Part shown: positions 28,701 to 64,000 of the stretch, one piece after another
Layout of the letters: the number at the start of each line of letters is the position of its first letter
How positions within the stretch are numbered: position 1 is the first letter of the stretch
From: Takakia lepidozioides
Taxonomy: Eukaryota; Plantae; Bryophyta
Assembly: GCA_030704615.1 (NCBI GenBank)
Contig: CM060731.1
Location: 20,522,001-20,586,000, forward strand
DNA: 64,000 nucleotides
Reading direction: 5' to 3'
Made by a program: the position numbers and the translations under genes
The notes under the pieces: model-generated
What the model was told of the DNA's origin: nothing
The model's input: only the letters and a program-made list of their open reading frames with translations
The model's database searches: none

Positions 28701-30854
28701 TCCAAAGGTAGAAATAATGGCTGAGAGGATGAAGTTGGACCTTGCCGGACAATGTGATACTCATGGGAGCATGAGCAATCAGGCTTTGAAAACAGTCAAG
28801 CAGTCACCAGCATCTGAAAAGGATTTGGAGATAATGGCACTGCCACCAGCTTCGCAGGTAGGTCACCCTCTCTGTTATTTGCATGCACTAGATTAACAGA
28901 TTACCTTTATCAGGTTGCAAGGCTGTTTGTAGAATTCAGCTCACTTAGTTGGTCAGCCTCTTCTGTAATATCACCTTCTGTAGTCCCTAGGGGCTCCTCC
29001 AACCAGTCTTAGTATGCGATATGTGCACCTTGCCAAGTCTATTTGCCATGTCTGACTAACTCAGTACAAAACCTGAGCTGACAATGCATGTTATAACTGG
29101 TTGTACAATTTGAGGCACGGTGCGGGATTTTTGTGAAGAAACTTGTCATGATTCTACAGTCAGTGTAGACCAACTGATCAAACCTGCTATCATGGCAGTT
29201 GACTGTTCCATGTGCATACCTTTCTGTGCCTTTGACACTGAAGCAATATCTCAATCTCCCAGCCCCAAAAGCATGTGGCTATTGCCGCCACCCTGCCACC
29301 TTTCTTAGCCTAATGATGTTTATCTGAGCTCTCCAGCGAAGTGAGTAAAATCTCATATTTCCTAGTGGTTGTAGTTGGACCCGTCTGTTATGTCGGCACT
29401 TCCATTGTCAATGCGGCGTGAGATTGAAGGAGAGTACAAGTGGCAAGTGCGTGACAGGAGTGCAAGGGTCACTCTGGTTCGCAAGCATGTAAAGCAAGAA
29501 GAGACCAAGGTCTCTAAATGTCTTATTGAATCGAGTTCATCTGAGCCCATAGAGTTGCCAATCATTCAGCAAAGCAGTGAATCATCTCGATTCCATGACC
29601 TTTGGCTTGGGTCTCCGCCCAAGTGGGTCCACCTTTTCAAGGAGAGTAATGCTGCAGGTCAGTGCTGGCTTTGTGAGCTTGTGTATCCATGCTTATCTTT
29701 TCCCCACATGGCCCCATTTCACAGTTGTGATTCCTACGAGGGGTTTAATAGGAGTGTTTAGTTAATAGTATTTTAATGCGATAACTGCTTCCGTGAATGA
29801 ATTTTGTAGGTCTTCACATATATGAACTGGCTGACAGAAGTCTCTTCGTCAATGTTCCAGGCTCCAACATTCTGTGGGTTCTTTCAGAACTATACTCGAC
29901 GGTATCGTCATCCAAGTCTTTATCATCCATTCTTCTGTCTCTAAGTCCCCATGTTGCACAAGATGATTGCAGCTCTGGAAGAGAGGTATGCAGGATGGTA
30001 ATCAACAGCTGTGTGGAGTTGGTGAAACAGTATGCCCAAGTTACAGTGTGGCAGAATTTGGAAGAAGTATACATGGTTCTTCGTCTTATCAAGAGGTAAT
30101 TCTCACCTTCCTCTTTCCACCTCAAACAAACACCCCCCATGCTACACACGTTGGGTGTGTTATTATGTAGAGCCACAGGGAGGTTCTAAGGTCAGAACAC
30201 CATACAATTATGAGGGTCTCCTGAAACTCCCTATGAAAATGATGTCTCGCTTTGAGGTGCTGTAAACAACTCAGATTGTGGAGTGCCACACAAATAAATT
30301 GGATTGCTATGCTGCAGGTTTGGAGCTAAGTCCCAACTGTGGAGGAGTGTAGAGGATCACGCAGTGCCTGCCATTCAGGTACTGACTTTGGCCCTTGTTG
30401 CAGATTTATGGGATATATCACTGTGAGGTGATAGCAGGCTGTTTACTTCAACATCCTCCAAAGTTGACCTTCGTTGGGATTTGCAATGAATTTGGTTAGA
30501 TTTTGAGATGCTTTTACAAGCACAACCCATGCTAAGGCCAAGGTGTCTGTTAGAAAGTGGTTGCTAGGGCATTCTCACTGCAATTTTGCTCGGCAGTCTC
30601 CAGGCATTGGAATGAAGTCTGGCAGTGTTTAAGGTGCTTTTGTAGCATCGTTGTGTTGAGACTTTGATCATGATGTTGATTTGGTGTACTGTATTGCAAT
30701 GCCTCGGGGGAAGCAAAGGCTATAGAAGTATATGTAATCTAAATCGCTTTTTCTCGTGTTCTGAAACTTTCAGATTATGATGAGTAGTGGAAACCCTGAA
30801 CTGTGATTGTAGGTGATTGTTGGAGATTGTTATGGAGGTCATCTTGCCACCTAG
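19728..30854 (+). CDS. REV1: Y-family translesion polymerase / dCMP transferase REV1 (multi-exon)
   Basis: BRCT (GVSIWVDGFTIPSHQ|ELRHLMLCYGGVFENYF..THIICS), SRLHFIGTWRNRY, IIHIDM|DCFFVAV, AVSCDEAFLD, SAGIAGNMLLARLATRKAKPNG, RKSIGAEVNWGVRF, KFMGCGHCD, UBM-like LPP.SEIDSAVLASLP repeats, C-terminal NLEEVYMVLRLIKR. Last exon 30813-30854 VIVGDCYGGHLAT*. Confidence 0.96.
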
Positions 30855-46237: not shown

Positions 46238-46807
46238 TCAACAATGAGGACATCTAAATGGAAACGTTGTTGCTGGAATTCTAAGACAATTTGCGTGATA
46301 CAAACAGCGGCAACGCTGACATTTCATCATTCGAATGTCAGGGTTTTCAGGCATCCTGCATACACAATGTAATGGGTTGTCTCCATGCGAGACTTCGTTG
46401 GTGCGAGTATTAAAATCATAGCGATGGATGTAGACATCGGTACCAATGTTTTGTAGCCGTTTGTATCCTTCGAGATCGTAGACAAAACATTTTCCCACTA
46501 TTTTTGTTATTGTCATGTAGCGATCAGACAACAACAACTCATGTATACCATGATAAGGCCCTCTCCCTTCAGGAGTGTCCTCTGGCCGAACATAGAAACG
46601 AACCCGCAAATTATGTTGTAGTCCAGTGTAATTTTCCCCCAAAAACTCCCTCATTGATTCTACTCGAGCCACCATGACCCTCACATTCCTCAAATCACGA
46701 TTACGGACAACGCCTCGTAAGACGTACACATGGTTACCACACTCTATCAAGTTTGTATTCACTATGGCGGAGTTAATAACTCTGCCCGGGTAGGTTAATG
46801 GGTCCAT
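46238..46807 (-). CDS. Intronless, divergent EBS/SHL-like BAH-PHD protein (189 aa)
   Basis: BAH motifs VARVE, VRFYVRPED..GRGPYHGIHELLLSD, IVGKCFV. PHD C4HC3: CVCRMPENPD..MMKCQRCRCLYHANC..FRCPHC. ORF is uninterrupted from ATG to TGA. Confidence 0.85.
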   Translation of the reverse strand: MDPLTYPGRVINSAIVNTNLIECGNHVYVLRGVVRNRDLRNVRVMVARVESMREFLGENYTGLQHNLRVRFYVRPEDTPEGRGPYHGIHELLLSDRYMTITKIVGKCFVYDLEGYKRLQNIGTDVYIHRYDFNTRTNEVSHGDNPLHCVCRMPENPDIRMMKCQRCRCLYHANCLRIPATTFPFRCPHC

Positions 46808-48105: not shown

Positions 48106-49190
48106 TTACAAATCGGTTGTAAAATGATTGACGTAATCTGGAAGTGTGAATGCTAAGTAAATGGGTTTGTGGTCGGTCCAATATGCTTCTTTTGTTCCAG
48201 ACAAACAATGTTGCATAGGTGAATTAATCCATATATGATCTAATTGAGAATTATAGTTTGTTGTAGGTTCATTGAATGTAAGATGAAAGTTGTAGTGTTT
48301 CATGAATGAGTGAAGAGAAACAGATTCTCTATTGGATTTGTGAAGATTGATATTAAAGTCTCCGATAAAAATAGTGGGACAATTTTTCGGTGCTCGATCA
48401 TATAAGTTTTGTAATTTTATAAAATGTTGTGAAAAGAAAGCAAAGGAGGTTTGTATATTGCAATGACATGAATGGCTCTATGAGAATTTGGATTGAAAGA
48501 CGCAGCAATGAATTCTGCACCGTTGTGTGTTTGGATTTCGTAATTTTGAAGCGAGGTGGTTTTATCATATAGAATGGTTGTTCCGAGTCCATCATAACAC
48601 GAGAGTCTTGAAAACGATCATTAGGTGCATATAGTGACCAGTTTTGATTGTTTGGATGTAACGTGTTTCATTTAAACATAATATATGAGATGTTCGTAGG
48701 CTGTAGTCGCTCATAATATCACAATGATGATTGTGCATTGAACGAATATTTAACGATTGAATGATTGCATGCGTGCGAAATAGTAGTTGCAAATTTGGTG
48801 TAGACAAATTCCATTTGGTAGTTGTTTGAAGTCTAATTATTTGGTTACGTATGATGTCATCCACATGGAAATTTTTGTCATGTAATGGAGCTAGGAGATA
48901 TAAGTGTTGTCGTTCTTTTATGCGCGATAAAGTTGTGTATGTCAATCCGTGCTTGTTCATGTTTGTTGGGTCAAATGCAAGACGGTCCATGGTCAGTCCT
49001 TACGCTCTGTGTATAGTACGTGCTGCTGCAAGTTCAATTGGGAACTGGGTACGAGTTATTACGTGGTCAGGATTATCCATGAATTGAATTTCTTTGGTTT
49101 TGGCTGCAATTGGAGTCCAAGATTTACATATGTCACAATTGTTTTGGTATGTGTGAGTAAGAAGCTCGTGTTTCATGTCATATTTGTTCA
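48106..49190 (-). mobile_element. Helentron/Helitron2 remnant: PIF1 helicase C-terminus fused to an APE-type endonuclease
   Basis: Helicase motifs RTQFPIELAAARTIHRA*GLT and GLTYTTLSR, followed by EEP motifs SLNIRS, LCLNET, IGDFN, LDHIWI, TDHKPI. Stops and frameshifts present. Confidence 0.88.
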
Positions 49191-49759
49191 TTAAGAAAAT
49201 ATAACCCTATTTTAACTAATTCTGGACTTTTGGCTTAAATCCGGACCAAACTTAATATGTATTTGAATTAAAATTAATTCAAAATTAATTCAAAATTTAT
49301 TAATAATATCTTGGATAGTAATGTGTGATTGAACTTTGTGAAATTATCAGTGATGTCATACTTGCTTCAAAATGTAACATATAAGATGTCCATTTGACAT
49401 TGAAGTGCTTGTGAAGTTGCAGTGTAACTCAACAATTCATTGAACGTCGACTGGGAAGTCGAATGATGTAATATTACATTATGTTACAATACGATAAACA
49501 AATGTGTCGAATCGAACATGGGATAGACTCATAGTCCATACTTGATATAAGTTGATAGTAATTTTGATTGAATCTTCATGTTGACAAGCACAATATTCAT
49601 AGACAATGCCATTGGAATGATGTTTTGGGTGTGAGAGGGCAGTAAAATATTAAAATAGCGTGAACATTAGGAAGATGACCTACTAGGGCAGTAAAATAAG
49701 GTTTGGGGTGTAACTAGATATATTAAGTGCAATAAGGTCCAAGTTTGTGGTGACTCGGA

Positions 49760-50895
49760 GAAGGGTTTAGGGTTTTAAAGGGTTTAGGATAGGAAAAGGA
49801 GAAACAAATATGGACGACTCTAAACCTCTGTAGAATGTAAAAATGTAAGGGGAATTTGATATCCATGTAATCATTCTATCATACGTTATCCAACTTGAAA
49901 ATTAAAGAAAACATTAAGAGAATGATACAAATTTTACAAGAGGTAACATGGTAGTACAATAAGGTTTGGAGTTTATTATAAGTAGGGTACTACACTAAGG
50001 TTTTGGTATATGGTTAAAAAGTAATGGTTTAGGGTGCTAAGGGTCACGCTTAAGCTTGGGGTAAGGATTATTAAGGGAAGGGTAAAGGGAAAGGTAAGGG
50101 TTTAGGGTTTGGATTTAGGGTAGAAAGGGACAAACAAATATGGAAGACTCACACATGGTAGTACAATAACTTGGTTTGGAGTGTAAGTAGGGTAGTACAC
50201 TAACCTGGTTTTTGGTATATTATGGTAAGAGTACTAATGGTTTAGGGTAGTAAGTGTCAGGCTTAAGCTTAGGGTAAGGATTAAGGCCAGGGTTCAGGAA
50301 TGGGTAAGGATTTAGGGTTTGGATTTAGGTAGTTCAAATGGACAAACAAATATAGAAGAATCACACATGGTAGTACAATAACTTGGTTTGGAATGTAGGT
50401 AGGGTAGTACACTAACCTGGTTTTTGGTATATTATGGTAAGAGTACTAATGGTTTAGGGTAGTAAGTGTCAGGCTTAAGCTTAGGGTAAGGATTAAGGCC
50501 AGGGTAAATGAATGGGTAAGGATTTAGGGTTTGGATTTAGGGTAGTTCAAAGGGACAAACAAATATAGAAGATTCACACATGGTAGTACAATAACTTGGT
50601 TTGGAGTGTAAGTAGGGTAGTACACTAACCTGGTTTTTGGTATATGGTAAGAGTAATGGTTTAAGGTAGTAAGTGTCAGGCTTAATCTTAGGATAAGGAT
50701 TAAGGCCAGGGTAAGGGTTTGGATTTATGGGAGTACACAAAGGTTTTTGGTATATGGTAAGAGTAATAGTTTAGGGTACTAAGTGTCCGGCTTCAGCCTA
50801 TGGAAGGGTTAAGGGAAGGGTAAAACGAAGGGTAAGGATTTAGAGGTTATGGTAAAGATATAAATGGACAAACAAATATAGAAGACTCGCACTCA
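49760..50895 (+). repeat. ~212-bp tandem repeat built from degenerate TTTAGGG units
   Basis: Anchor GACAAACAAATAT(A/G)GAAGA at 50129, 50341, 50554 and 50867, with a diverged copy at ~49801. Units are rich in GGTTTAGGG/GATTTAGGG/TTAGGGTAAGG. Confidence 0.9.
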
Positions 50896-51079
50896 CTAGA
50901 ACCAGACATTGCAAAAAAAACATTTAGACCGGATTGGAAAAGAAAGAATCCAGGGGTTGTGCCAGCTTTTTTTTTTTTTTGTGCATTGTCTGTTTTGTAA
51001 GCCAGAATCCCCCATGTCACGAATATATGTAGATGAACAGAATGTACAGCAGTGCAGAGTCCAACACGACATATAGATG

Positions 51080-51103
51080 AACGTCCACTGCCCACTCGAG
51101 GTT
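51080..51103. repeat. 24-bp palindrome, copy 1 (degenerate, 3 mismatches)
   Basis: AACGTCCACTG-CC-CACTCGAGGTT, flanked by ATG/CAT; ~150 nt 3' of the transposase stop. Confidence 0.75.
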
Positions 51104-53011
51104 CATTGCGACAGAAAAAGAAGACAGGAAGGCCCAACGCAAACACGAAGGGAAAGAAGCGTAAAGAAATTTTTTATTCTTAAAATGAAAGACCGGAAAT
51201 AACCTCAACATTTAGTCCATGGATGGAAAATGGTTCGCAAGAAGGAAACCTTCAGGTATCTGGCTGAAGGTTAGCAACCTCCAAATTCGCGTGCGCCTTC
51301 ACTGCTTCCGCCGCTGTAATTCTCTTGGTGCTATTTCTTGTCGTATTTTCTCGTGGCGGCATTGTCCACACGACATAGTTCACGTGGATCCATTGAGCAG
51401 GATGATGGGTTGTACTCCCAAACTTTTGACCAACAGTCCCTGTACCTCTCAAAGTCTGAGGGGTTACCTCCTTTCTTCGGTCTCCACCACTCTACCTTCA
51501 CTTTCTTAAAATTAGGATCTTCCATTTCTCGGATGACATCTGAAATTGCCATTCCCATTCAGACCGGGCACGTCGTTGGGTCATGAGGGTGAACGAGCAC
51601 AAAAAACCCTTTCTCAATATCCTTGAACGGATTCAAGGGTATCATTGGACGCTCACACCTAGGGCCACGGTAAGGTTCTGGAACTTCATCCTCATCTTCC
51701 ATATCTTCCAGTATCTGTGGCTGGATGCCATCTCTCCGATGGTTTGAGGACCAATTTGTTTTCGGCCAAAATCCCTCAAGAAGCTGAATACGATCCGGAA
51801 TGTCTTGCATTGGCTTATCAAGTTCGGCAAGAATATTTCCCCAGTATTGGTCATATTGTTCCATCACACCCCGGTAATGATCGTCAAGCAACATTTCTTT
51901 GGTCCAAAAATATCTGTATTTCTTAATACCATTTTTTATGAATGACTGTTTTTCTAAGGAGTCGTCATCGACTCCCCATATCGGTCTTCTTGGAACGACA
52001 TCTGGTTCTCCTTCAGGGAGATATGGAGTCCCATCAGGATTGGACTTCCACATCTTAACGCTGGAGTTTGTAGGAAGCCCCTCCGAATCAGTAGCTGACT
52101 TCTTGTACTTCATAACGGGCCAGCCATCCGCATCCTTAAAAAATCGAAAGACGTGCATCTCTGAGATCCCCACCAAAGCCTCATTTCCATCATGAATACA
52201 ACCCTTAACAAACTTCTTGAAGTCGGGAACTTCCTGTGTGATTTGAGGAATGAATTGCATATCTTGGGAGATCATGAATGACCTCATCAAATCCGGAAGA
52301 ATGTAGGTGCTGCGTTCCTTTAGCTTCTTCGAGAGATAACTAAAGAATCCGTCAATATCCTCATGGGTGTGCCCGACCATGAGAAAACCAAGCTGGATCT
52401 CTTCAAAGACATCTTTGGCAGTGAGGAGGGATATGAAAGCAAGCATCCATCTGTTCAGGAGTTGTCCATCTGCAAATAAAGTCGTCTAAGAAGTGGTCAA
52501 GCACCACATTTATCGTGCGGCCTGCAGGGTTTCAGAGCCTCCAAACATCTCGATTTACCTCTCATGAGCGTTTCAAAAAAATCATTTTGAACTTCAATGT
52601 CGAAAATGTTCCTGGATTCCCGGCATGTCGGCTTTTCCAGTTGGCGCAGGCACCGAGCCAGCGACCCAAATGTGAAGTTTGAATTGCCTTTCCAGAACTC
52701 AAGGGAAAATTGAGCGTAAGCTCCGTCTCCGTGTCCGTGTGTAACCATTCCTGTCAATGAAACAGGCAACTGACCCAATCCGGAGACCATCTTGTTCGTC
52801 GTCTGTAGCCTCGGAATAGCCGTTTTCTTATGATCCATCTTATCATGAATAATACATAGGAACTCCTCCGGAACCATAACGGACTCATTCCTCCAGCTAT
52901 GGTACAGCCTTCTGCATGACTCTTGATGCCTCAAGTGCAAATCAAACGTCCGCTTATGTGCGATCTGTTCGGAACTCCTCTTAATCGACTTCTTGATCAA
53001 GTCCTTGAACA

Positions 53012-56000
53012 CACTACAACAGATGAGCGTTTTTATAACTGCACATATGAGTATTTTTTCAGTCCTATATCCGTTCATGACTACATCACTCTGTAGTGAA
53101 AAAAACCCTGTCATAGCGATTAGTCTTTAGGACTGCATTTTGCAAGTCATAGCCGTGACTGCGTGCGTGGCACCTGGAGTCATGCATAAGAGAGTGATGT
53201 AGTCACAACTCTATGACTTACATACGACTAACTATATGACTACATTGTCTGATGAGCGTTACCTACATGGAGAAGCTTTAGAGGAACACGTGCACCACTG
53301 CGCAAGCGACACGTCACGACACCTATTGCACTTTCAGATGTGACATGTGGCACTTAGACATAATATATGACTAGCATATATGGCAGGGTTTATGCCACGT
53401 GTCATCAAGAATGTCTCTGAAAATAATTTAATAGTTATATTTGTAATTTTAAATTCTTAAATTTTTATTTTATTTTTGAAAACAGGGGATAGCAGCTTGG
53501 AAAAATTTAAATGGTATTATTGTTTAATTTAATAATGTTATATAAAATAAAAATAGATTAAATGATTTAAATTCTTCATTACATGGTGAAATTCTGATAT
53601 AAAAACAGAATGGACCCCTCTTACATACTAGCAACCACAAGGACATTCAAAATAGACAAGTACAGGGGAATACACGCCGTGTAAATTATATTACAAAAAT
53701 CCAAATGAGACCAATGTCCCAATGGACACCTCAAAGACCACAAGGTCCAAAAATCCATGCCTGAAAAGGTTCAGTAAGCAAAAATAAGCAAGCCCACACA
53801 TGGGCTGAATTGTTGTAATACTAGTTTGTTCTGGTGCTACTAGAATCAAGGACCCTGTTAAACAGTGCAATAGTTACAGCCGATTTGATAAGAGGGAAAA
53901 ACAGGGTGAAATGTGTTGAAGAATGTGCCTTGATTAACAGTGCCTGATTTGATCAATTGTGCCGCTGCTGCTGCGGCTTCCAGTTGACCATCTACCCATG
54001 CAGGTTTCTTGTACCTATCCTTCCACAGGGAATCATAGGTAATATGGAGCTTGAAATCCGGCCCTCTTGGATGAATCTGGACCCACACATCTATCCCTGC
54101 TCCTTCAGCTATCCATGCCCCTGCACAAATCATGCATGCATCCTCGCCTTGCTGCTAGCAGCTGACAATGACAGCCTAGAATTGCTTGAGCAAACACCCC
54201 AACCCTACTTATCACACAAGTTCCTATGCTGACTTGCGTCTGCTTCCAACATGCATTCACACCTCGATTGTTCCACCATTGACTGAGGTCGGGAACGTAT
54301 TCATCCTAGAGCTTCTCCTCGAGTCTCTGTTATCTATTTATTGATACTTTCCTGTCGACCACATTGGCAGTAACATGTCAAAATCACTCCAAAACTACCA
54401 TAGATCCACCAACGAGCTAACTTGCAGAATTCAACATTAAAATTTAGGGACGACTCTGATAGCAAGGGAAAACAAGATGAAATATGTTGAAGAAGGTACC
54501 TTCATTAGCAGCGCCTTGTTTTATGAATTGTGCTGTTGCCGCTGTTGTTTCCAGTTGACCATCTACCCACTTGTAGCCGCTGTGAGCTATTGAAGAAGGT
54601 GCCCCCTTCCCCCATCATTTGATCATAGGTCTCCATACCATGTCCCTGCTCTGCATACCCTGCAAGCATCGCGTTCCATGACACCACATCTCGTTCAGCC
54701 ATAGTGTTGAAAACTCCCTTCGCATCCTTAATGCACCCACATTTCGCATACATGTCCACAAGGGCAGTGTTCAAAATGACATCTGGTACAATTCCAGCTT
54801 TGATGATGTCACCATGGACCTCTTTCCCCTTTTCCAGAGGTCCCAGGCTTGCACACGCATTGCAAACACAAACAAACGTGATGTGGTTGGGCTTCACCCC
54901 TTCGCGCAGCATTTGCTCATAGGTCTCCAAAGCATTCCTACCACACCCATGCTTGGTAAATCCTGCCAACATTATATTCCACGTGATCAAAGATCATTGA
55001 GACATTCTGTTGAAAACTTCGTAAGCATGCATGCATGATGCTCCTGCACTTAACATACATGTTTGCTCCTGCACCCACATTTTGCATACATGTCCACCAG
55101 GGTATTGTTCAAAATGACATTTGGTACAATTCCAGCCCTGATGATGTCGCCATGGACCTCTTTGCAAGCCCTTTTCCAGAGCTGCCATGGCTGTGTTCAG
55201 AATGACATTTGATACAATTCCCTGCTTCTTCAACTATCCGTGCGTCTGCACAAATCATGCATTCATCTTTGCCTTGCTGCTAGCAGCTCACAATAACAGC
55301 CTAGATACCTAACTCAGCTTATGACCCTAGTTCCTATGTTGAATTGCGTCGATACTCTCTGTAATCTAACAGACATTCACCTTTTTGCCTCGATTGTCTC
55401 ACCGTTAATTGGGGTCACAAAAGTATCCATTCCACAACTTCTCCTCATCTCTGTTACATACTTTCCTGTTGTCACATTGGCAGTATCATGTCAAACTCGC
55501 TGCAAACTAGATTCACTCAACCAGCTAACTTGCAGAATTCAACATGGAAATTTAGGGCCAATTCTGTGATTGGAAAGAGAACCCAGAGGGATGGAATGGA
55601 AGCAGTAGCATGGGTATGTCTCTGATGCATCAACAGACAGCAGTCAGACCAAGTTCTATGACCCAAACCCAGAGTGAGCATAATGGCTTTGTAAGGCCAA
55701 TGCCTACAGGGCATATTCAATACTACAATGAGGATACGCAAGCAGCAGATACCATGTGCAAATCAAAAAACAACAAAAACAGATAAGAGAAGACAGCTCG
55801 CAAGAAACGGATAAGAGGGAAAAATAGGGTGAAATGTGCTGAAGGAGGTGCCTTCAGTAGAAGTGCCTGACCTTATCAATTGTGCCGCTGCTGCTGCCGC
55901 TTCCAGTTGACCATCTACCCATGTAGGTTTCTTGTAGCTATCCTTCCACATGGAATCATAGGTAATGTGGAGCTTGAAATCCAGCCCTCTTGGATGAATC

Positions 56001-57197
56001 TGGACCCACAATCTATCCCTGCTCCTTCAGCTATCCATGCCTCTGACAGCCTAGAATTCTACCAGCAAACACCCCAACCATACTGGTGTGGAGTTCTTCC
56101 CCAAAACACCCCAACCCTACTTATCACAATCTGAAATGCATCTGCTTCTCTCTGTAGTCCAACAGGCATTCGCCTTTTTGTCTCCATTGTCCCACCATTA
56201 ACTGGGGTCGGAAAGTGTTCACCCCAAAGCTTCTCCTCACCTCTATTATATGTTGTTGGATACTTCCCTGCTGCCACACTGGCAGTAACTTGCCAAAGTC
56301 ACTCCAAACCACCACAGATCTACCCAACGACCTAACTTACAGAATTCAATATGCATCTTGCGGCCAAGTCTGATGAGATGGCAACACAGGCTGAAATAGA
56401 TTGAAGAAGAAGGTGCCCTACCACATTGTCCTTGACCTGTCCTGACCCATGGAGGATTTGACCGACCATCAACCTAAAAGGACCTCTTGTGTGTGCTACT
56501 TGTGTCTATAGTCAGGTAATGTCGGATTGGTCTGTGAGATCGAACCACTACGGCGTAGCTGAGTAGTCAGAGATTGAAACACGCCTGCTAAGACCAAGCT
56601 GACTCTCCCAAGAACGGCGAGCTCGCTTCTCCTCGTCTCCTCTCCTCCTCCTCTTCTCCTTCGTGCATCATTTGCTCAATGCCTCCATCCCACGCCCCTG
56701 CATATCCTGCTATCATCGCGTTCCATCCCTCGGCTATGTGGTGTGGCGCAGGAGACAAAAAAAATGCCAAGTCCCAGCCCTCCTTTCTGTTCACGATTAC
56801 CCTAATGGGCAACCTTATTAGCAACTTTTTAACTTTTTTAAACCTAATGGGCAACCTTATTTGCATTATATGTGCCTTCAAAATGACACGTGTAGTGTGG
56901 AGTCGTATAAATAGAGCTGTGAAACCATCTTCAGTCATGGAGTCATAAGATTCCATGAAACGTCGTCCACGTGTAGTCAAACATATCACACTAGTCATAT
57001 AAACCATCCCTGTCATCATGGTCGACAATGTTTGACCAATGCTCCCTAACTTTCCGGAGTCATGTAGTGATATCCATTATTACAAAGTCATAAAACTATG
57101 ACTGCAATGCATTTCAGCACTCTGTAGTCATCTACCTAGTGCAGTTTTTATGACTCCGCCAAAGCCGTAGTCCTAAAAACGCTCATCTCTTGTAGTG
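53012..57197. mobile_element. Non-autonomous Pack-CACTA, 4186 bp, complete
   Basis: 23-bp TIRs CACTACAA(C/G)AGATGAGCGTTTTT. 3-bp TSD ACA (53009-53011, 57198-57200). ATGACT/AGTCAT subterminal repeats at both ends. Removing the element restores the host reading frame. Confidence 0.96.
53860..56730 (-). pseudogene. Cargo of Pack-CACTA: PLS PPR pieces interleaved with ~3 decayed copies of an unidentified ~190-aa domain X
   Basis: PPR at ~54600-55230 and ~56660-56730. Domain X at ~53870-54600, 55240-55560 and 55800-56440 (e.g. AWIAEGAGIDVWVQIHPRGPDFKLHITYDSLWKDRYKKPAWVDGQLEAAAAAAQLI). Confidence 0.8.
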
Positions 57198-57353
57198 ACA
57201 TCTCGCATTCTGTGCACTTAGCAAAGGTGCTTCCTGTTTTCCAAACCTCCACGTTAGGAAATATTCGATTCCGTATACGGCTTATAGCTGGTTGCGAGAC
57301 TCATTTCAAACCGAGCAGTCTGTTTGTCTGCACCCCAACTCCCCAACAATGTC

Positions 57354-57377
57354 AACGTCCACTGGGCAGTGGAGGTT
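57354..57377. repeat. 24-bp palindrome, copy 2
   Basis: AACGTCCACTG-GG-CAGTGGAGGTT inside the transposase intron (57328-57475). Confidence 0.9.
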
Positions 57378-58750
57378 CTACAAAGTGGAAGAACAAGAAA
57401 GCATGATGGCATCAAAAATAATAAAATCATCCACAGTATTTTGAAAAACGAAAGGGGACAACGAATAAAAGTCACCTCGTTGAACTCCTCTCGAATTCTC
57501 TTCCAGTTCATTTCGGGTGGCAAAATTCTCAAAGTATCCCGACGTCCCTTTCCAATGCAACGTGTTTTGTGAGGCATAAGGTCAGTATTGGCATTGATAA
57601 TGGACATAATGTTCCCCTCTGCCTGGAGTGTCCCTAGTCGCGGCCGCTTGACGCCACGATTTCCGTGGAAAGATGACAAACAACCCTCTTTACTGAACTT
57701 TTTGTACTCCATATACGTTGACCTTCCAATTCCGTGTATTATCCACCATGCTTTCTCACAAACATCAACACCTTCTATCGTAACATACCACCTGCGCGAT
57801 GACCCATCCATAATGTGAAGTCGTTTTGAAACATTCAATCCTCTCATCGAATGACGAACACGAACTGCCAAGGTTTTTCTCCAATCAAAATACTGGCAGC
57901 ACTGAAGCTTGCAGCAAGGTTTGCTGCTCACCGACCTCACTTCATCCAAAGTAAGATTTTTCTTGCACTTTTTTTAGTCCTCCATATTGGATGGATTTTT
58001 CTTCATAGTAAAATACATGTATGCTGCTTTCAATATGCCTGTACCATGGTCGTCATTCTCCATATCTCTACATGATCGTAGGAAATTTTCGAGATCAACG
58101 GAGAGTATCCGGCCATTTTCAAGAAGTCTTGTTTTTGTTAACAGCCATTTCACAATCGACATCAGTGAACCGGACTCTCCAGAGATTGTTTTGGTGACCA
58201 GAACCCCAACATCGTCCTCTCCGAGTTTGTCATTCAGAATGATCTCGTTAGGAATGCATGCCTGAATTCGGCCTTTGAACAGGGCGTTTCCGTCCTCCCC
58301 AAGAAGAAGACACTGCAAGTTTTTCCAACATTCTCTCCCCAGACCTGCAGGCAGATCCCCCCCAGTCTCACCATTGGACGGAATATCATTGTTTTCAGAG
58401 CTTTGTCCTTGATAATCACTACCTTCTATGATGGAATGACATCCTGGGTTTCTCGGGGATGATGAATCCACAGTTTCATGCGTGCGAACACAGGACACGT
58501 CCCACACAACTGGAGTCCCAATCGCCTCCTTCAATGTGTCAGCATCCATGTGTCGATAAGGCAGAGGACAGGAGCCGAATGCGTCATCACAAAAGATCAG
58601 GGTAACTGAAATGGTGGACGAACACAAGTGGTGTCCGTAGCAAGTTCCATCCCCAGATACATTCAGGCAATCTCCTGAGGCAACAACTGAAGGAGATCCA
58701 GGAAGTGATAGAAACACCCTTTGGCCTACTTGGAACTCCATGAAGTTAGT

Positions 58751-58774
58751 AACCTCCACTGGGCAGTGGAGGTC
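58751..58774. repeat. 24-bp palindrome, copy 3 (half-site also at 59019-59032)
   Basis: AACCTCCACTG-GG-CAGTGGAGGTC, 10 nt upstream of the probable transposase ATG (58741). Confidence 0.9.
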
Positions 58775-60356
58775 CAGTCAAATCCTATTACTGGACTGAA
58801 GATTAACTGAAGGAAAGAAAGTCTTGCCACCGAAAGGAGAAACTTTTAAGTATAATTTTTTCGACTGTTTTGAATGAGAAAACAATATGGATTGAAAAAG
58901 TAAAGTCAATGTTTGGATCTACACTGGGACTGATAAAAAACAATTGGAATTAAATTGGAGTATGAGGGCGGAGTATAGACTACATCTATCAGAACTGTCA
59001 GATGAAGTCACAAATGCCAACCTCCACTGGGCGTACGTTAGTAGGACTACAAGTCTGGCATCATTATCGTGTGGCTCTGACAGCAGACTTTGGAATAAGC
59101 GTGAAGGATGTCGATTCTGACAAGTGGCCTGGAGAAATGAAGTCAGGCGGCTAATCGCCACAACTAATTCGGGACTGCACATTAATAATCGATCATTATA
59201 ATTAGCTGGGAGGAATCCGGAGGTGAACCATAAAGCACTTTGAGATTGTTCTGTTTGTATTTATCGTGCTGTTACAGTGAATAAAACACTTGGGCAGGGC
59301 GGGGCATTACATGCTGGCGCATTGCATTGGACAGCGAGGGCGGTGCATTACAGGTGGCGGAATGCTCTGTTGTGCCTTGCTTGCTTGCACATGTTTAATG
59401 TAGGGATGGACCCCTCATGTTGGGTATCCCTCGATAAATGGGCAGTCCCTATGGTGGCTCTGGACCTTAAATCGAGGAATGCCCGACACGAGGGGCCATC
59501 TACTATCCTTAAAGCCGTATGTCTGTCAGGGAATATTGACGCCTGGCGGCTAACAGCCGAAAGTAATTGTGGACGGCTCAATATGAGTCAATGATTATAC
59601 AATGTGACGAATCCGTAGGCACAACGTTGTGTCCTCTGGCAGATTGAGTTCGAAACGACTGCCTAGGCGTGTCACGTGGGTGGTCACATGTGCGTTTGGG
59701 GCGTGGGTTAAGGTTTGTTGGTTTCGAATCTATTTTAAGATTTTTGTAAGCGTGAGGGTTGCAGAGTCTGACCAATGGCATCATTACAATCATTTCGTCC
59801 TTTTTTCATTCGTCTATCCAGTCGTCTATCCAAACGTGTGTGCATTCGTGGAACAAAAGTTGAACTAATTTTATCTGTATGGATGGACAGTATTAATGTT
59901 AGTTTGCGTGGATGGGGCAAAACATCCATTTGGGCCGCGCGACCGTTCGATTTCGGACAGAGGCGATGGTTCAGATCATCCTTGAAGGTCGCTTATAAGG
60001 GGTGCGCTCTTTGAGCCCGGCCTTTGGGCTTCCCATTTTCTACGCGTAAGCGCTGCGCGAGTGAGAGCTTAACAGTTGAGAGAGGAGAGCGTGAAAGAGA
60101 AGAGTTTTGGAGCTCGTTTTGCAGCGACTGGACACTGGAGCGTGGAGAGAAAGAGCAGACTTGGCCAAGTGCAGAGAGAGGAGAGGGTGAAAGGTGAGAG
60201 AGTGAAATAGACGAAATTTGAAGAGCGGGGAGGAGAGACCGGACAGTGGCGAGTGGAGATTGATGAGTGTAGAGGCGAGAGCACAGTGCAATTACCGGCA
60301 AGCGGAGGTGCGGAAGAGAGTATCAAACGAAGGACTGTGGTTGCAGGGCCACCAAA

Positions 60357-62032
60357 ATGGCCGGCATAAACAGGTACAACATTAAAAACTCCATCTTTTC
60401 GTCTTATGTTTCACGTTTTGTGTTGGCCTATTCTCAGTTTTGTGTTGGCCCCCTCTCGATTCATGTGGCCTGTTCAAGATTCAATTCGTTTGGATCCTGC
60501 TTCATTCTCTGCTGCACTGCACTGTCTTCAGTGCTTCAGTCCGTGCTTTAGTGCACATTAGGATTCTGTTTCATTGTTTGCTTCAATGTTTGTTTCAATG
60601 CTGTTTCATTCTCTGTCAATTCATTTCACTCCTGCTCCATTTTGTGCTTCAGTGCATTCCTGCGTCATTGTTTTCACTGTTGTTTTTCAATTCACCGATG
60701 GTTTGTGTGGTGGTTTTGTGTGCAATTGGGTTTGTGTGTGCTTGTCTGGTCGATTAGGGTAATGGTTTAGGGTTGCGGGAGATTACCGTGCTGGTTGTAT
60801 TGCTTGTTTTGTTCATTGTGGTGATTTATTGAGGACAATGGTTTCGGAAATGCCTGGATGTTTATTTCTCAACCGTTTTCTTGATCCCCAAATCCAGCGT
60901 TAGTTGATGCATTTCTTCCCATTCAAATTCGATTCTGAATGGAAATTTTCATTTCTTATCCAATTATGTCGAATTCGACAATTCTGAAAAACCACGATAG
61001 CCTAGTCTACTTGTATTCTACAGTAGACATATGCTAACAGTAGGCTTCGTGCAGAGTAGAGTATTCGTAGACCCATATCATGCACATGAGCAACCAGAAA
61101 CTGGAACCTCCACTGCCCAGTGGAGGTTCGCGTGAATTCTGTATGCGGAAGCTGAAAGACATTTTTTTAAAGTAAGGACGAATCGGATAATTACGGGAAA
61201 ATTGAAATCAGTTTGAGACGATGTGGGAAAAAGTGATGGAATCATATGTGTTACATTGTAAGTGTGACACATACTTTCCAACGAGACTGGGATACGATAA
61301 TTGGGAACCTCCACTACCCGATATTTCTTTGGGTCAGCCAGTTACACACTCTGATTAGTTTTTATGTCAGAATGAGAAAGAGGAACGAGGGTGGGGAACC
61401 GGTGTCTGACGATGAGTACAAGACAGCCAGATTAAATTGGAACAAGAGACGGTGTTCGGTAGACGTGATGGAAGCGGACCGTCCAGATAAAAAACATGGT
61501 GTTTCGGAACCAGATAAAAAATCCAGTTGGGGGTCTAGACTCTACCGAGCCGAACAAAGTGTCTGTCAATGACAAAAATGTGACTGTAGAATCCCCGCGG
61601 AACGCATCCGAATCTCCGAACAATACACCTGAAGTCATCTGTAAGGATACCCTGGCGGAAATAAGAGAAAGCGTTCATGTAAACAATGATATCAACGGAT
61701 CTCCTGCCTACTCCCAAGATTATCCGACATACACCCCTTCAAACTATTCTCTAGACACATTGGCGGCGATACGAGTGACCGTTTTTGGATATCCAGCATC
61801 TCTGGGTTACTCGCCAGCATCTCCTGAATCCACATCAGGATCTGAAGGATATTATCTTCCAAACTTCTTCCTAGACACTGAAACGAGCGGGGGAGTCCTG
61901 GAACTACTGGACGTCTCCGGATCTCCAGGGTACTCCCCTGCGTCTCCTGATAGTATCACCAGATCCCCAAAATATACCCCTCCAGACTATTCGCCTGATA
62001 CACTCACATAGATAAGAAAGAGCATTATGTAG
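60357..62032 (+). pseudogene. Element-borne gene for a Ser/Pro/Tyr-rich protein with Pol II CTD-like YSPASP repeats
   Basis: MAGINR spliced (GT 60374 - AG 61370, phase 2) to MRKRNEGG... Frameshift in the A-run at ~61520. ~40-aa repeats opening DTL(A)xIR and containing GSPAYS, YTPSNYS, GYSPASPE, GSPGYSPASPD, YTPPDYSPD. TAG at 62009. Confidence 0.6.
61105..61128. repeat. 24-bp palindrome, copy 4 (perfect arms; half-site also at 61305-61319)
   Basis: AACCTCCACTG-CC-CAGTGGAGGTT inside predicted intron 60374-61370. Confidence 0.92.
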
Positions 62033-62208
62033 TTCTTGGGTATATAATCTAGAATCGTCTGAATATAGTGCGAGAAGTTCCTTAGTATATTTTGGACGAA
62101 TTAGGTTCGAAGATTTCTATTGTAGATTAGTCCTGTTTCAGGATGATGTACTCAATGGCTCCTGAGCCTCATTTTCATTAAAGTTTTTTCCTTCAACATC
62201 TGTAAAAT

Positions 62209-63490
62209 ATGGAGGATTTCCCATTTCATCCAGATTGCGTCCCGGGATTGATTGGAGATATTTGTGGCGCATTCGTATGCCGGAAGTCCTCACATTTCAA
62301 AACTGAGCATACCGCTATTTTTGAGCTTAACCCAGAGGTGACAGATTGGGGCATCGTGCCTGTCGGTACACCTCCTGATCACAAACTGTCTTTTCATTAC
62401 AGAAGTCTTGGAGTAATAACAGACTTAAAATACGCAGAAACTCTCGATATAGAGCTTGAATCTGAAGAGGAAAACCCGATGTTGGTTTTGTTCCTGCATG
62501 CGGATGCGAGAACCCCCAGGACGTTTGGTTTCAAAGTGGAGGTGGGTCGTCTGAACAAGTCGTTGATGAGTGAATGCGTTGCACTGGGTTTTAGATTTCC
62601 AGACGAGGGCTCAGTATTTACAGACGTAGGTTTGTCGAGGGCCTTGAGTATTTTTCTGGATCTTTAGCACGCAATGGGGGACGACATTCGCAAGAAGCGA
62701 GCACTACATGAAGCATCAAAGCCGAAGAAGGGAAAACGCAAGTCGTCGACAGGCGGCAATGATGATAATGAGGCCGGGACTTCCGCAGGAAAGAAGAAAC
62801 AGAAGGAGGATCAGGATCCAGCATTGATGTCAGATAACAAGAGACCTAAAGCTGGGGAGATTTTTGACAATGAAAAATGCGAGAAGATGGAGGAGAGGCT
62901 CACGAAGGAATACAATGATGTATTTCCATTCGGATTCGAGAGTACCTTCCTTGTGAAGGTTTCCATGATGGAACTAGCTCCAAGAAGCATGGTTTATAGG
63001 CCGTTAAATATCAAGCATAAGGACGAAGTGAAAACGCGACTCTTCCAACTTCATTTGTTCGACTCCAAACATCCGGTGTATCTTGCGCCAATCAACCCTT
63101 CCAATCCCGAAAAGATTGCTTCCTCGCGACCGAAGCAATGGAAGGAGATAGACGTATCAAGCTTCTTCGTAATTGATGGACAACACACCATCGTGGCAGC
63201 AAAGTTAATGGACTTCATTTCCTCCCAGACCTCTCTTTTAATGAACCTCCACTGGGCAGTGGAGGTTGGTGTTGAACTACAAAATTGGATATGTCCCCAC
63301 ACTTTCAACTCTCTTACCCATTTTACATTAACTGTAGCAGGAACTTCTCGAGGATCTTGCCGACAGTGAACTGAAGGAGTACTACCGGGAGTGGTCTGCG
63401 AAGATTGTATGGTCTACCGATGAACAAAGGCTCCTGAAGTTGTCAAAGCTCCTCAACGATCCCAATAAGGTGCAAAAGTTTGATACAACA
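62209..63490 (+). pseudogene. Element-borne ParB/Srx-like (DGQH) domain protein
   Basis: ORFs 62209-62667 and 62674-63204 are in one frame, split by a single TAG. Basic NLS-like tract, then YRPLNIKH..VYLAP..FFVIDGQHTIVAAK. Continues after intron 63205-63340 (donor decayed to TT) as ELLEDLADSELKEYYREWSAKIVWS. Confidence 0.65.
63244..63267. repeat. 24-bp palindrome, copy 5 (perfect arms)
   Basis: AACCTCCACTG-GG-CAGTGGAGGTT inside the intron that follows the DGQH motif. Confidence 0.92.
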
Positions 63491-63494
63491 ATCC

Positions 63495-64000
63495 CCTCCC
63501 ACAACCCATCCTTGTGTGTGCGCTGGAAAATTCAAGCTTGCAGTCCGAAATGGGTTGGACGACTTCCTGAAATGGGTCCTTAAGCATTTTGAGGTCTACT
63601 TTTGGAACACTGGACCATTAGAAAATGTCCTGGATATAGGGCTGGCTTTGTTTGGAAGAAGGTTTTACAAGGTCAGGGAATTCAGTAATGAGAACTGCGT
63701 GAAGCATAGACAGACGTTCAGTGCCGAATGGCCCAAATATCCGAAAGCGCCAATATATCTTAAACGTCTCTACGACCTTTTCACTGTAAACGACCCTGTA
63801 GCATACAAATCAAACACACTTCTTATCGACACTGTAGAAAATATGTATAAGTCGTACTTGAACCCAAAGTCGTTCGGTATCTTCCTTCCAAAATATAAAA
63901 CACTCGTCGACCCATACAAGGACACGTTTCTTCTCGATGAACTCAAACTGCACCTGGAAGAGTTGCGGTTATCCGGAAAAGACGCTGATATATTCAATGT
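63495..64000 (+). pseudogene. FCP1/SCP-homology (NIF, HAD-fold CTD-phosphatase-like) domain, N-truncated, open to window end
   Basis: Manual translation: KLAVRNGLDDFLKWVLKHFEVYFWNTG..ENC..PIYLKRLYDLF..YKSNTLLIDTVENMYKSYLNPKSFGIFLPKY..DELKLHLEEL. This matches the NIF pattern RP..DEFL....FEV..WS..LKEL..NTLLIDD.PYK..NP...IF. The DxDxT motif is absent at an out-of-frame junction with the ParB-like gene. Confidence 0.75.

Follow-up and report, generated by a model that had tools for sequence, protein, structure and literature searches.

The 64-kb stretch of DNA analysed here, which we call the window, contains a decayed copy of a large cut-and-paste transposon, in which a DUF7869 (Sola-like) transposase lies head to head with an accessory arm. 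Across the relatives of this element, each subfamily scatters its own palindrome, 18–35 bp long, through the introns, promoters and ends of both genes. The family suggests that a bacterial module for partition and methylation has been rewired in eukaryotes, with the loss of both catalytic motifs.

The element in the window

The features of this copy, by position in the window, are:

49203–49247, plus strand: terminus on the 3′ side of the transposase; the imperfect TIR of the family, with an AAC start and two GGAC boxes
49442–49465: probable decayed palindrome about 240 bp inside the terminus; a weak, 70% match to the family
50022–50714: G-rich, telomere-like 212-bp satellite, subterminal and inside the element; degenerate from about 49,600 to 50,890
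51080–51103: palindrome with 3 mismatches, 3′ of the transposase
51334–53011, minus strand: transposase part 2, the DUF7869 core with a GHTHED motif; PF25273 at E 5e-25 and 5e-4; 46% identity to P0001
53012–57197: nested non-autonomous CACTA element; 29-bp TIR starting CACTA, 3-bp ACA duplication
57198–57327, minus strand: first piece of transposase exon 2, with a C-x2-C motif; severed by the CACTA insert
57354–57377: palindrome in transposase intron 1 (57475–57328)
57476–58741, minus strand: transposase exon 1, N-terminal domains; tblastn matches to L001, L002, L006, L091 and L092
58751–58774: palindrome 9 nt ahead of the first ATG of the transposase
59019–59030: half palindrome at a deletion; complete in other genomic copies
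60357–60373, plus strand: predicted first coding exon of the accessory arm, from GT/AG sites and frame; spliced in frame to 61371
61104–61129: perfect palindrome in the first intron of the accessory arm
61305–61318: half palindrome, missing 11 nt that are present in other genomic copies
61371–62030, plus strand: exon of low complexity, rich in S/P/Y, with YSPASP at 61808 and again at 61931; the window copy has a frameshift near 61534
62209–63204, plus strand: first part of the ParB-like protein; N-terminal region (62209–62667), basic linker, core ending FFVIDGQHT
63244–63267: perfect palindrome in the intron (63205–63340) of the ParB-like gene
63341–63491, plus strand: exon 2 of the ParB-like gene, severed by a deletion at 63491/63492
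63531–64000, plus strand: NIF (FCP1-homology) HAD domain; PF03031 at E 4e-7 (63531–63998)

Where does the element begin? An earlier note on this DNA, made from the letters alone, had drawn it from 50,900 to 64,000. It is indeed one unit, but its start lies at 49,203, as located with a matrix built from 24 related ends, and the CACTA insert splits its transposase. The terminus scores 15.7 with this matrix, about 16 being reached in 1 of 200 shuffles, and an AT-rich site 100 nt inside it scores higher, at 16.9; by eye, the terminus resembles the ends of L001, L002 and L006. A ‘CACTAG’ at 50,895 was rejected as the element end because the family terminus lies at 49,203. Imperfect 28-bp TIRs are present at both ends of L040 and L006, and the window holds one end only (49,203). 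The insertion target was a Helitron-like helicase gene. For Sola1 the target duplication is the 4-bp AWWT (PMC3845634); the window flank, ATAT, fits, the flanks of L040 are ATAT versus TTAT, and many right flanks misfit. The 4.2-kb CACTA insert carries fragments of host PPR genes and stands outside the system proposed below.

The Pfam match bears out the minus-strand DUF7869 transposase that the earlier note had described. We take DUF7869 to be a marker of Sola transposases, and the Sola assignment here rests on that domain. The gene is broken: part 2, which has a short intron near 52,470–52,520, carries a stop at 51559–51561, and exon 1 is disrupted by an in-frame stop at 57974–57976. The window copy shows a methylation-type excess of C-to-T changes (110 vs 47, p 5e-7); it therefore went unprotected, which counts against the anti-silencing role considered below.

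The accessory arm, with a TATA-like box near 59,994, had been read as three plus-strand genes. The arm is real; that reading missed a 152-codon frame at 62209 and did not see that a deletion had fused the ParB-like and NIF genes. The 152-codon frame was itself rejected as a fourth gene: it is the front of the FFVIDGQHT protein, because its stop, at 62665 and private to the window copy, is a sense codon in the other copies. The deletion at 63491/63492 joins the ParB-like gene to the NIF exon, leaving loose ends on both sides relative to other copies. It took out the helical and methyltransferase-like regions, whose intact order is seen in L007, L089 and L092, and the N-terminal motif region of the NIF domain, which continues past the window edge.

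The 24-bp palindrome, AACCTCCACTG-NN-CAGTGGAGGTT, starts at 51080, 57354, 58751, 61105 and 63244. All five copies (5/5) are non-coding and they lie on both sides of the unit, as the earlier note had it; the rest of the 64 kb, with its 49 kb of host genes, has none, and the number expected by chance is 0 (100 shuffles). The decayed copy at 49442–49465 has the position of a subterminal palindrome copy in relatives, which also carry their own palindrome at the matching spot in transposase intron 1.

Relatives of the element

Do these genes belong together? The arm is one multi-copy element, covered evenly, in all 30 bins, by about 1,000–2,000 diverged contigs. The same divergent layout recurs in L089, L091 (Riccia), L092 (Calypogeia) and L032, all found via the transposase alone, L089 and L032 being from moss-type samples. 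With this even cover and shared layout, the co-occurrence of the genes as one element family holds. In L069 the ParB-like/NIF arm terminates in the family terminus, and in L090 a ParB-like gene and palindromes adjoin an unrelated, MULE-type transposase. The domain order in intact relatives is a ParB/DUF3723-like N-terminal domain, a helical middle and a dead methyltransferase fold, then the NIF HAD domain. Near-intact loci lie in Calypogeia fissa (CBCUJL010000001.1) and Riccia sorocarpa (CM100796.1).

We infer a ParB fold for the N-terminal domain. In the ESM Atlas, the features of a homolog, P0130, resemble those of DUF3723 (0.96) and ParB_N (0.91). The fold check called for by the earlier note gave, besides these features, a poor AlphaFold model (P0130:160–379, pLDDT 50) with the order helix-strand-strand-GQH-helix; a fold search with this model returned only helical noise, and the model of the L007 middle exon (pLDDT 33) was unusable. 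Spliced genes were queried exon by exon. The ParB-like core, as single sequences and as alignments A1 and A5, had no match in Pfam, NCBIfam, PHROG or PDB; no DGQHR/DndB-like family of NCBIfam matched at E 1, the Arg of DGQHR being missing, no HTH was matched in the protein, and for the core no close relative turned up among bacteria or viruses. Word-based searches with P0130 and the NIF piece, which reach similar-length proteins only and are no evidence of absence, brought nothing new.

In intact relatives the β-class methyltransferase-like domain matches PF01555 (E 2e-4) and M.RsrI (E 2e-4). Its C-terminal SAM-binding motif I region is present, with an eroded glycine loop, and the catalytic motif IV, (D/N/S)PP(Y/F), is lost, DFS, DTT or DLT standing in its place. 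Judged by these motifs, the β-class N4C/N6A amino-methyltransferase fold of the relatives is catalytically dead. The FCP1-homology domain of the earlier note is real, and PF03031 is matched in L007, L089 and L092 too. In L003, the palindromes end ahead of a CACTA transposase, and the arm there is possibly part of a CACTA element.

How far does the rule of one palindrome per subfamily extend? Among four distant elements with the same head-to-head layout, three clearly have their own palindrome, in line with the earlier note; in L007, which has the whole accessory arm, none was found, and this speaks against the ParB-like protein as binder. At least nine different cognate palindromes occur in the family. 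No palindrome match was found in the JGI metagenomes and IMG/VR, in keeping with the expectation that the palindrome is uncommon outside the family. None of 265 sites falls in coding sequence, although this makes up 27% of the length.

What binds the palindromes?

The arms lack stem-like co-variation, the inner variable pairs assorting freely, C-A mismatches included (Fisher p 0.47 and 0.27); the palindromes therefore look like binding sites for a protein dimer rather than stems.

To our mind the chances are about even that the ParB-like protein binds the palindromes of its own subfamily as a dimer, without classical CTP-gated sliding, and so marks its own copies. The bound sites would keep copies of that subfamily transcribed or unmethylated, by analogy with VANC on VANDAL. 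The protein might also serve, in trans, the palindrome-bearing copies that have a transposase only, and the NIF domain is probably a helper. A broader version can be advanced only tentatively: in seed-free plants, giant transposons from several superfamilies unrelated to one another would share a portable lock-and-key cassette, in which a ParB-derived protein, having given up CTP and methylation chemistry, acts epigenetically and with sequence specificity to activate the long palindromes peculiar to a subfamily, serves transposase-only copies in trans, and recruits a NIF-type phosphatase or pseudo-phosphatase to the transcription machinery. If this were true, the co-evolution of protein and palindrome would yield an orthogonal code usable for targeted de-silencing.

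Might the transposase itself be the binder? The palindromes would then be sites for its N-terminal domains, for self-activation or the gathering of ends, and the ParB-like/NIF arm a separate cargo; we find this possible, if somewhat doubtful. It needs no action in trans. In 29 loci the sequence reaches at least about 5 kb beyond the transposase on its upstream side and has no ParB-like gene; nearly all of these loci have a palindrome, and transposase-only elements of 5.5–7 kb (L001, L002, L006 and most JGI loci) keep 6–13 palindromes, placed in intron 1 and close to either end. Since so many transposase-only relatives keep the palindrome, the binder may be either the ParB-like protein in trans or the transposase. 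Palindrome type also tracks the clades of a quick transposase tree (72 rows, loci under 150 aligned residues excluded). Moreover, binding to clusters of family-specific motifs, with activation of their copies, is described for transposases and TnpA (10.64898/2026.08.24.746577); however, the TnpA motif is a 10-bp asymmetric word, and palindromes appear nowhere in that text (10.64898/2026.08.24.746577). Two further observations speak against the transposase. The MULE-type L090, with its unrelated transposase and its ParB-like gene, has a palindrome whose half-site is 8/10 like that of L089, from the same sample. And in L089, L091 and L092, where 12, about 26 and about 30 palindromes are spread over both genes, most copies are found within the ParB-like gene or close by, a long way from the ends.

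That the palindromes are sites of host transcription factors, collected by the elements for their expression, seems improbable. All elements of the peat-moss-type samples have the same palindrome, and an 8/10 half-site links four palindromes of a single ENA sample, as this would predict. In Riccia, however, a second ParB-like gene adjoins the first and its introns carry a different palindrome; two unlike palindromes side by side disfavour a single host factor, and Calypogeia adds two more that are unrelated. Arms of 11–16 bp are long for a plant factor, and the host genes of the window have none.

The earlier note had itself proposed a CTP-gated ParB clamp that loads at parS-like sites and spreads, with a CTD mimic and a CTD phosphatase tuning RNA polymerase II, which we now hold to be quite improbable. 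The size of the palindrome is parS-like, as the ESM features are ParB-like, and VirB, which has a ParB fold, anti-silences from a palindrome using CTP (PMC10245682). But box II, G-x-R-R, which VirB needs, is replaced by G-Q-H-T/S (or I/M) in the window and in all motif-intact homologs; Arg occurs there only in a separate DGNHR type (L090). The supposed YSPASP-repeat protein has two copies only, 41 codons apart; they differ at silent sites only, which would favour a mimic, but two heptad-like words set apart from each other do not amount to a CTD, and YSPxSP is absent from eight related loci. PF05001 (CTD heptads) reaches E 0.1–0.16, under the cut-off, and no homolog of the S/P/Y-rich exon was found in relatives. 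A NIF domain does follow the arm in L003, L007, L069, L089 and L092; its motif in relatives is nevertheless DVNG, DLNR or DLNK (DxN) instead of the DxDx(T/V) of an FCP1/SCP-type CTD phosphatase. Clamp, mimic and phosphatase are thus not supported.

Finally, it is highly improbable that the palindromes work as hairpins, whether of RNA or of single-strand DNA, or that they are the neutral remains of a tiny repeat spreading inside the element: their location in introns and UTRs, the co-variation of the outermost pair (p 3e-9) and the tandem 28- and 36-bp arrays, a sign of local amplification, would fit, but the free assortment of the inner pairs disfavours a hairpin function, many palindromes have no loop at all, and their sequence, beyond its symmetry, is preserved throughout a transposase clade whose depth exceeds 1 substitution per site.

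Detailed knowledge of how transposons recognise and protect their copies is limited to a few Arabidopsis systems. ParB-like self-binding has so far been a passing prediction for algal elements, and the present family extends the idea to land plants. It also offers material for tests: near-intact liverwort loci, two protein–palindrome pairs in one genome, and natural transposase-only copies.

Comparison with known systems

The motifs of VANC are short words, not long palindromes. VANDAL elements have a Mutator-type transposase, whereas that of the window is DUF7869, and no VANC-type Pfam domain was found in the window. Shared with VANDAL/VANC are an accessory protein encoded by the element and family-specific non-coding motifs, which expand into tandem arrays and vary from one related family to another (PMC5735166).

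With Shigella VirB the family shares a putative ParB-type N-terminal domain and a palindrome, used for anti-silencing instead of partition (PMC10245682), a use that is predicted here. VirB requires G-x-R-R and CTP, whereas this family has G-Q-H-T/S in a spliced eukaryotic gene fused to a dead methyltransferase fold. In the ESM Atlas the ParB-like core comes closest to clusters of DUF3723 (0.96, a similarity of features without alignment), which fungal Starships, also giant mobile elements, carry as a conserved accessory gene (10.1101/2021.12.13.472469). Starships move by a tyrosine recombinase, unlike the DUF7869 transposon described here.

To speak of a new system, as the earlier note did, was an overstatement, the design having already been predicted for algal Sola1 and Plavaka elements. 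In Bostrychia, PAG2/PAG3 of Plavaka elements pair a ParB-like accessory gene with neighbouring inverted-repeat arrays, with predicted self-binding, and the genes ride Mutator elements too (10.1101/2025.02.11.637652). These red algal elements differ in their EnSpm/Plavaka transposase, in the fusion of the ParB-like part to a 2OG oxygenase and in a methylase on a separate gene. Sola1-1_Ec32 of the brown alga Ectocarpus is a giant Sola-type element whose opposite-strand gene joins a ParB-like part to an N4C/N6A methyltransferase, and which is proposed to bind its own sequence and to modify it; neither palindromes nor a NIF gene are described there (PMC12477816). The likeness is one of gene content and layout as described, and the moss and liverwort family differs in its loss of motif IV, in the NIF gene that comes next and in the palindromes, specific to each subfamily, that lie in introns. 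The algal arrangement, a ParB-like part with an amino-methyltransferase opposite a Sola-type transposase and inverted repeats nearby, is met in L089, L091 and L092, and the window has the same layout minus the deleted methyltransferase part.

The element and its decay

How far does the element reach, and which genes belong to it? Pfam matches confirmed two readings of the earlier note, a minus-strand DUF7869 transposase and, at the right window edge, a NIF (FCP1-homology) domain.

Principal features of the window (coordinates; strand; description)
46238-46807; minus; BAH + PHD (EBS/SHL-like) frame, intact, intronless, 189 codons, Pfam
53,012-57,197; non-autonomous CACTA element, 4.2 kb, within transposase exon 2, ACA duplication
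58,741 down to 51,334; minus; transposase, two introns, several stops

The family terminus falls at 49,203 according to a matrix derived from 24 element ends in relatives; at this point a Helitron-like helicase gene is broken by the insertion. The start originally proposed, 50,900, is therefore displaced, but the unit joining both gene sides stands. Given this terminus, a 212-bp satellite is internal to the element. The second end lies beyond the window edge, and no TSD emerged. In several hosts, telomere-like repeats rich in TTTAGGG coincide with such elements or lie close to them (window, 49600-50890; related loci L001, 1217-1325, and L003, 4317-5984). Short, non-coding, MITE-like derivatives carry the family terminus, some with palindromes (L012, 4856-6028; L015, 1870-3082; L006, 37-520). 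The nested CACTA element, a Pack-CACTA-like capture, contains rearranged pieces of host PPR genes as well as subterminal repeats. The BAH + PHD frame, near Helitron-like helicase and endonuclease fragments (48106-49191, minus), may be chromatin-reader cargo of a Helitron-like element. Exons at 24315-24734 and 28288-28893 (plus) resemble, by their motifs, a REV1/Y-family polymerase host gene. To judge by its numerous PPR genes and by the sources of the homologs, the genome belongs to a land plant, probably one without seeds.

On the accessory side, a short plus-strand exon at 60,357 could splice in frame to the S/P/Y-rich exon at 61,371. The interval 58,050-64,000 is evenly covered by up to about 2,000 diverged contig pieces from three DNA runs (two samples), a depth that is not a copy number. 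We conclude from this even cover that the 5' part of the transposase, the S/P/Y exon, the ParB-like gene and the NIF exon are one multi-copy repeat, the single unit that had been supposed. Relative to other genomic copies, only the window copy has the stop at 62,665, so 62,209-63,204 forms a single frame; it alone has a damaged splice donor, at 63,205; and it alone has the deletion at 63,491/63,492, which fuses the NIF exon with ParB-like exon 2. Of the three plus-strand genes first described, the S/P/Y, FFVIDGQHT and NIF parts are all present, but the last two are joined by deletion. These lesions, the transposase stops and the nested CACTA bear out the decay of this copy, whose differences from the others are skewed to C-to-T and G-to-A (110 versus 47, p 5e-7), the bias that methylation leaves in DNA as it decays. 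The NIF part also has a match of about 89% to one possible RNA contig, a weak finding.

Gene layout in relatives

Do these genes travel together elsewhere? Three loci were reached from transposase homologs only: L089 (an ENA sample; transposase 33-40% identical), L092 (Calypogeia fissa) and L091 (Riccia sorocarpa). In 3/3 the transposase lies head-to-head with a ParB-like gene, as the proposed co-occurrence predicts, and in L089 and L092 a NIF gene follows; L032, from a JGI sample, is a decayed version. The order ParB-like then NIF recurs in L007, L003 and L069, and the L069 arm terminates in the family terminus. This is one element family with a conserved layout. In intact arms two parts survive that are missing here: a helical region and an amino-methyltransferase fold of the beta class.

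L007 (514-5221) is a compact, apparently intact ParB-like/methyltransferase-like/NIF arm, with no detectable transposase on its 6.8-kb contig. In L003 (8650-18550) a CACTA gene (Transposase_21/DUF4218) lies convergent to the ParB-like and NIF genes, and the palindromes end before the CACTA part. L090 (5900-19800), from the same ENA sample as L089, has a transposase that we take to be MULE-type from recognised motifs and a weak SWIM match; it lies head-to-head with a second ParB-like type (DGNHR kept, methyltransferase-like part) with its own palindrome.

Palindromes

Five copies of the 24-bp palindrome, which has 11-bp arms and a 2-bp spacer, lie within 51,080-63,267, always in non-coding DNA and on both the transposase and accessory sides, as first noticed; the rest of the window has no further copy, and shuffled sequence none. 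Half-sites at 59,019 and 61,306 are whole palindromes in other genomic copies.

Each subfamily has its own word, as the earlier note had wondered: 10-1-10 in L089 (12 copies spread over both genes), 11-1-11 in L092 (~30 copies, with 36-bp arrays inside introns and ahead of the transposase) and 11-0-11 in 28-bp arrays in L091. An adjoining second Riccia element (L091, 12500-19550), with a ParB-like plus methyltransferase-like gene, has another word, with 16-bp arms and 74-bp repeat spacing, in its ParB-like gene. None was detected in L007.

Of eighty transposase loci in JGI metagenomes, mostly in samples whose numbers we read as peat moss, the greater part falls into a single deep clade (99% SH-aLRT). 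Throughout this clade a single 16-bp core is kept upstream and downstream of the gene as well as in its intron 1, with 342 matches against 7 in shuffles, the loci being mutually related and the counts not independent; 0/265 fall in coding sequence. These subfamily-specific, non-coding palindromes are under sequence constraint. Their inner variable positions in the JGI clade show no co-variation between arms; each half therefore fits the consensus separately, as in a homodimer site.

Most JGI-clade elements measure 5.5-7 kb, and no ParB-like gene is within reach of the transposase at any of the 29 loci whose upstream flank is long, nor in L001/L002 or the first L006 element. The ParB-like arms of L003 and L069 carry the same word as transposase elements of the same samples, and the L090 half-site matches those of Sola-type elements in its sample at 8/10 positions.

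Encoded proteins

Among 1.8 billion representatives, 22 are related to the FFVIDGQHT core, with no close bacterial or viral kin found. A ParB fold is predicted for the core from its pattern of motifs and from features in the ESM Atlas (DUF3723 0.96, ParB_N 0.91), but HMM and structure searches gave no match. ParB and VirB share G-x-R-R, which VirB requires for CTP-dependent anti-silencing (PMC10245682); this family has G-Q-H-T/S there, without the CTP arginines. The methyltransferase fold (PF01555, E 2e-4; M.RsrI, E 2e-4) lacks its catalytic DPPY-type motif and is catalytically dead. The NIF domains have DxN in place of DxDxT/V, which by motif sets them apart from the FCP1/SCP type. The two YSPASP arise from one 123-bp internal duplication, differ at silent sites only and are matched by nothing equivalent at eight related loci; they may be at most a lineage-specific phospho-motif.

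What binds the palindromes?

We suggest that a dimeric, element-encoded protein binds them. The ParB-like protein, which we give about an even chance, is favoured because its gene and the palindromes stay paired across unrelated transposases, and because two protein-palindrome pairs coexist in one genome. It would serve transposase-only copies in trans, and binding would counter silencing, by analogy to VANC (PMC5735166). The main rival is the transposase itself, since transposases can act as sequence-specific activators (10.64898/2026.08.24.746577); we consider it rather unlikely. A host factor is improbable. No better placed is the original proposal of a CTP clamp with CTD mimic and CTD phosphatase, against which stand the missing arginines, the DxN motif and the absence of YSPASP from relatives; a true CTP clamp would more plausibly be the DGNHR-type protein of L090. 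That the palindromes are a hairpin or relic is least likely of all.

Comparison with known systems

Is the system new, as first proposed? Not in kind: a ParB-like self-binding element is already known as a prediction, having been proposed for Ectocarpus Sola1-1_Ec32 (PMC12477816) and Bostrychia Plavaka elements (10.1101/2025.02.11.637652). In the open literature we found no publication on a land-plant form. With the former, the plant family shares a ParB-like plus methyltransferase gene (N4/N6 in Ectocarpus) opposite a Sola-type transposase; with the latter, a ParB-like gene accompanied by inverted repeats, there in arrays. New features are the occurrence in land plants, an intron-wide, subfamily-specific palindrome code, the absence of both catalytic motifs, a partner with a NIF domain, a connection with DUF3723, and dependants that have only the transposase.
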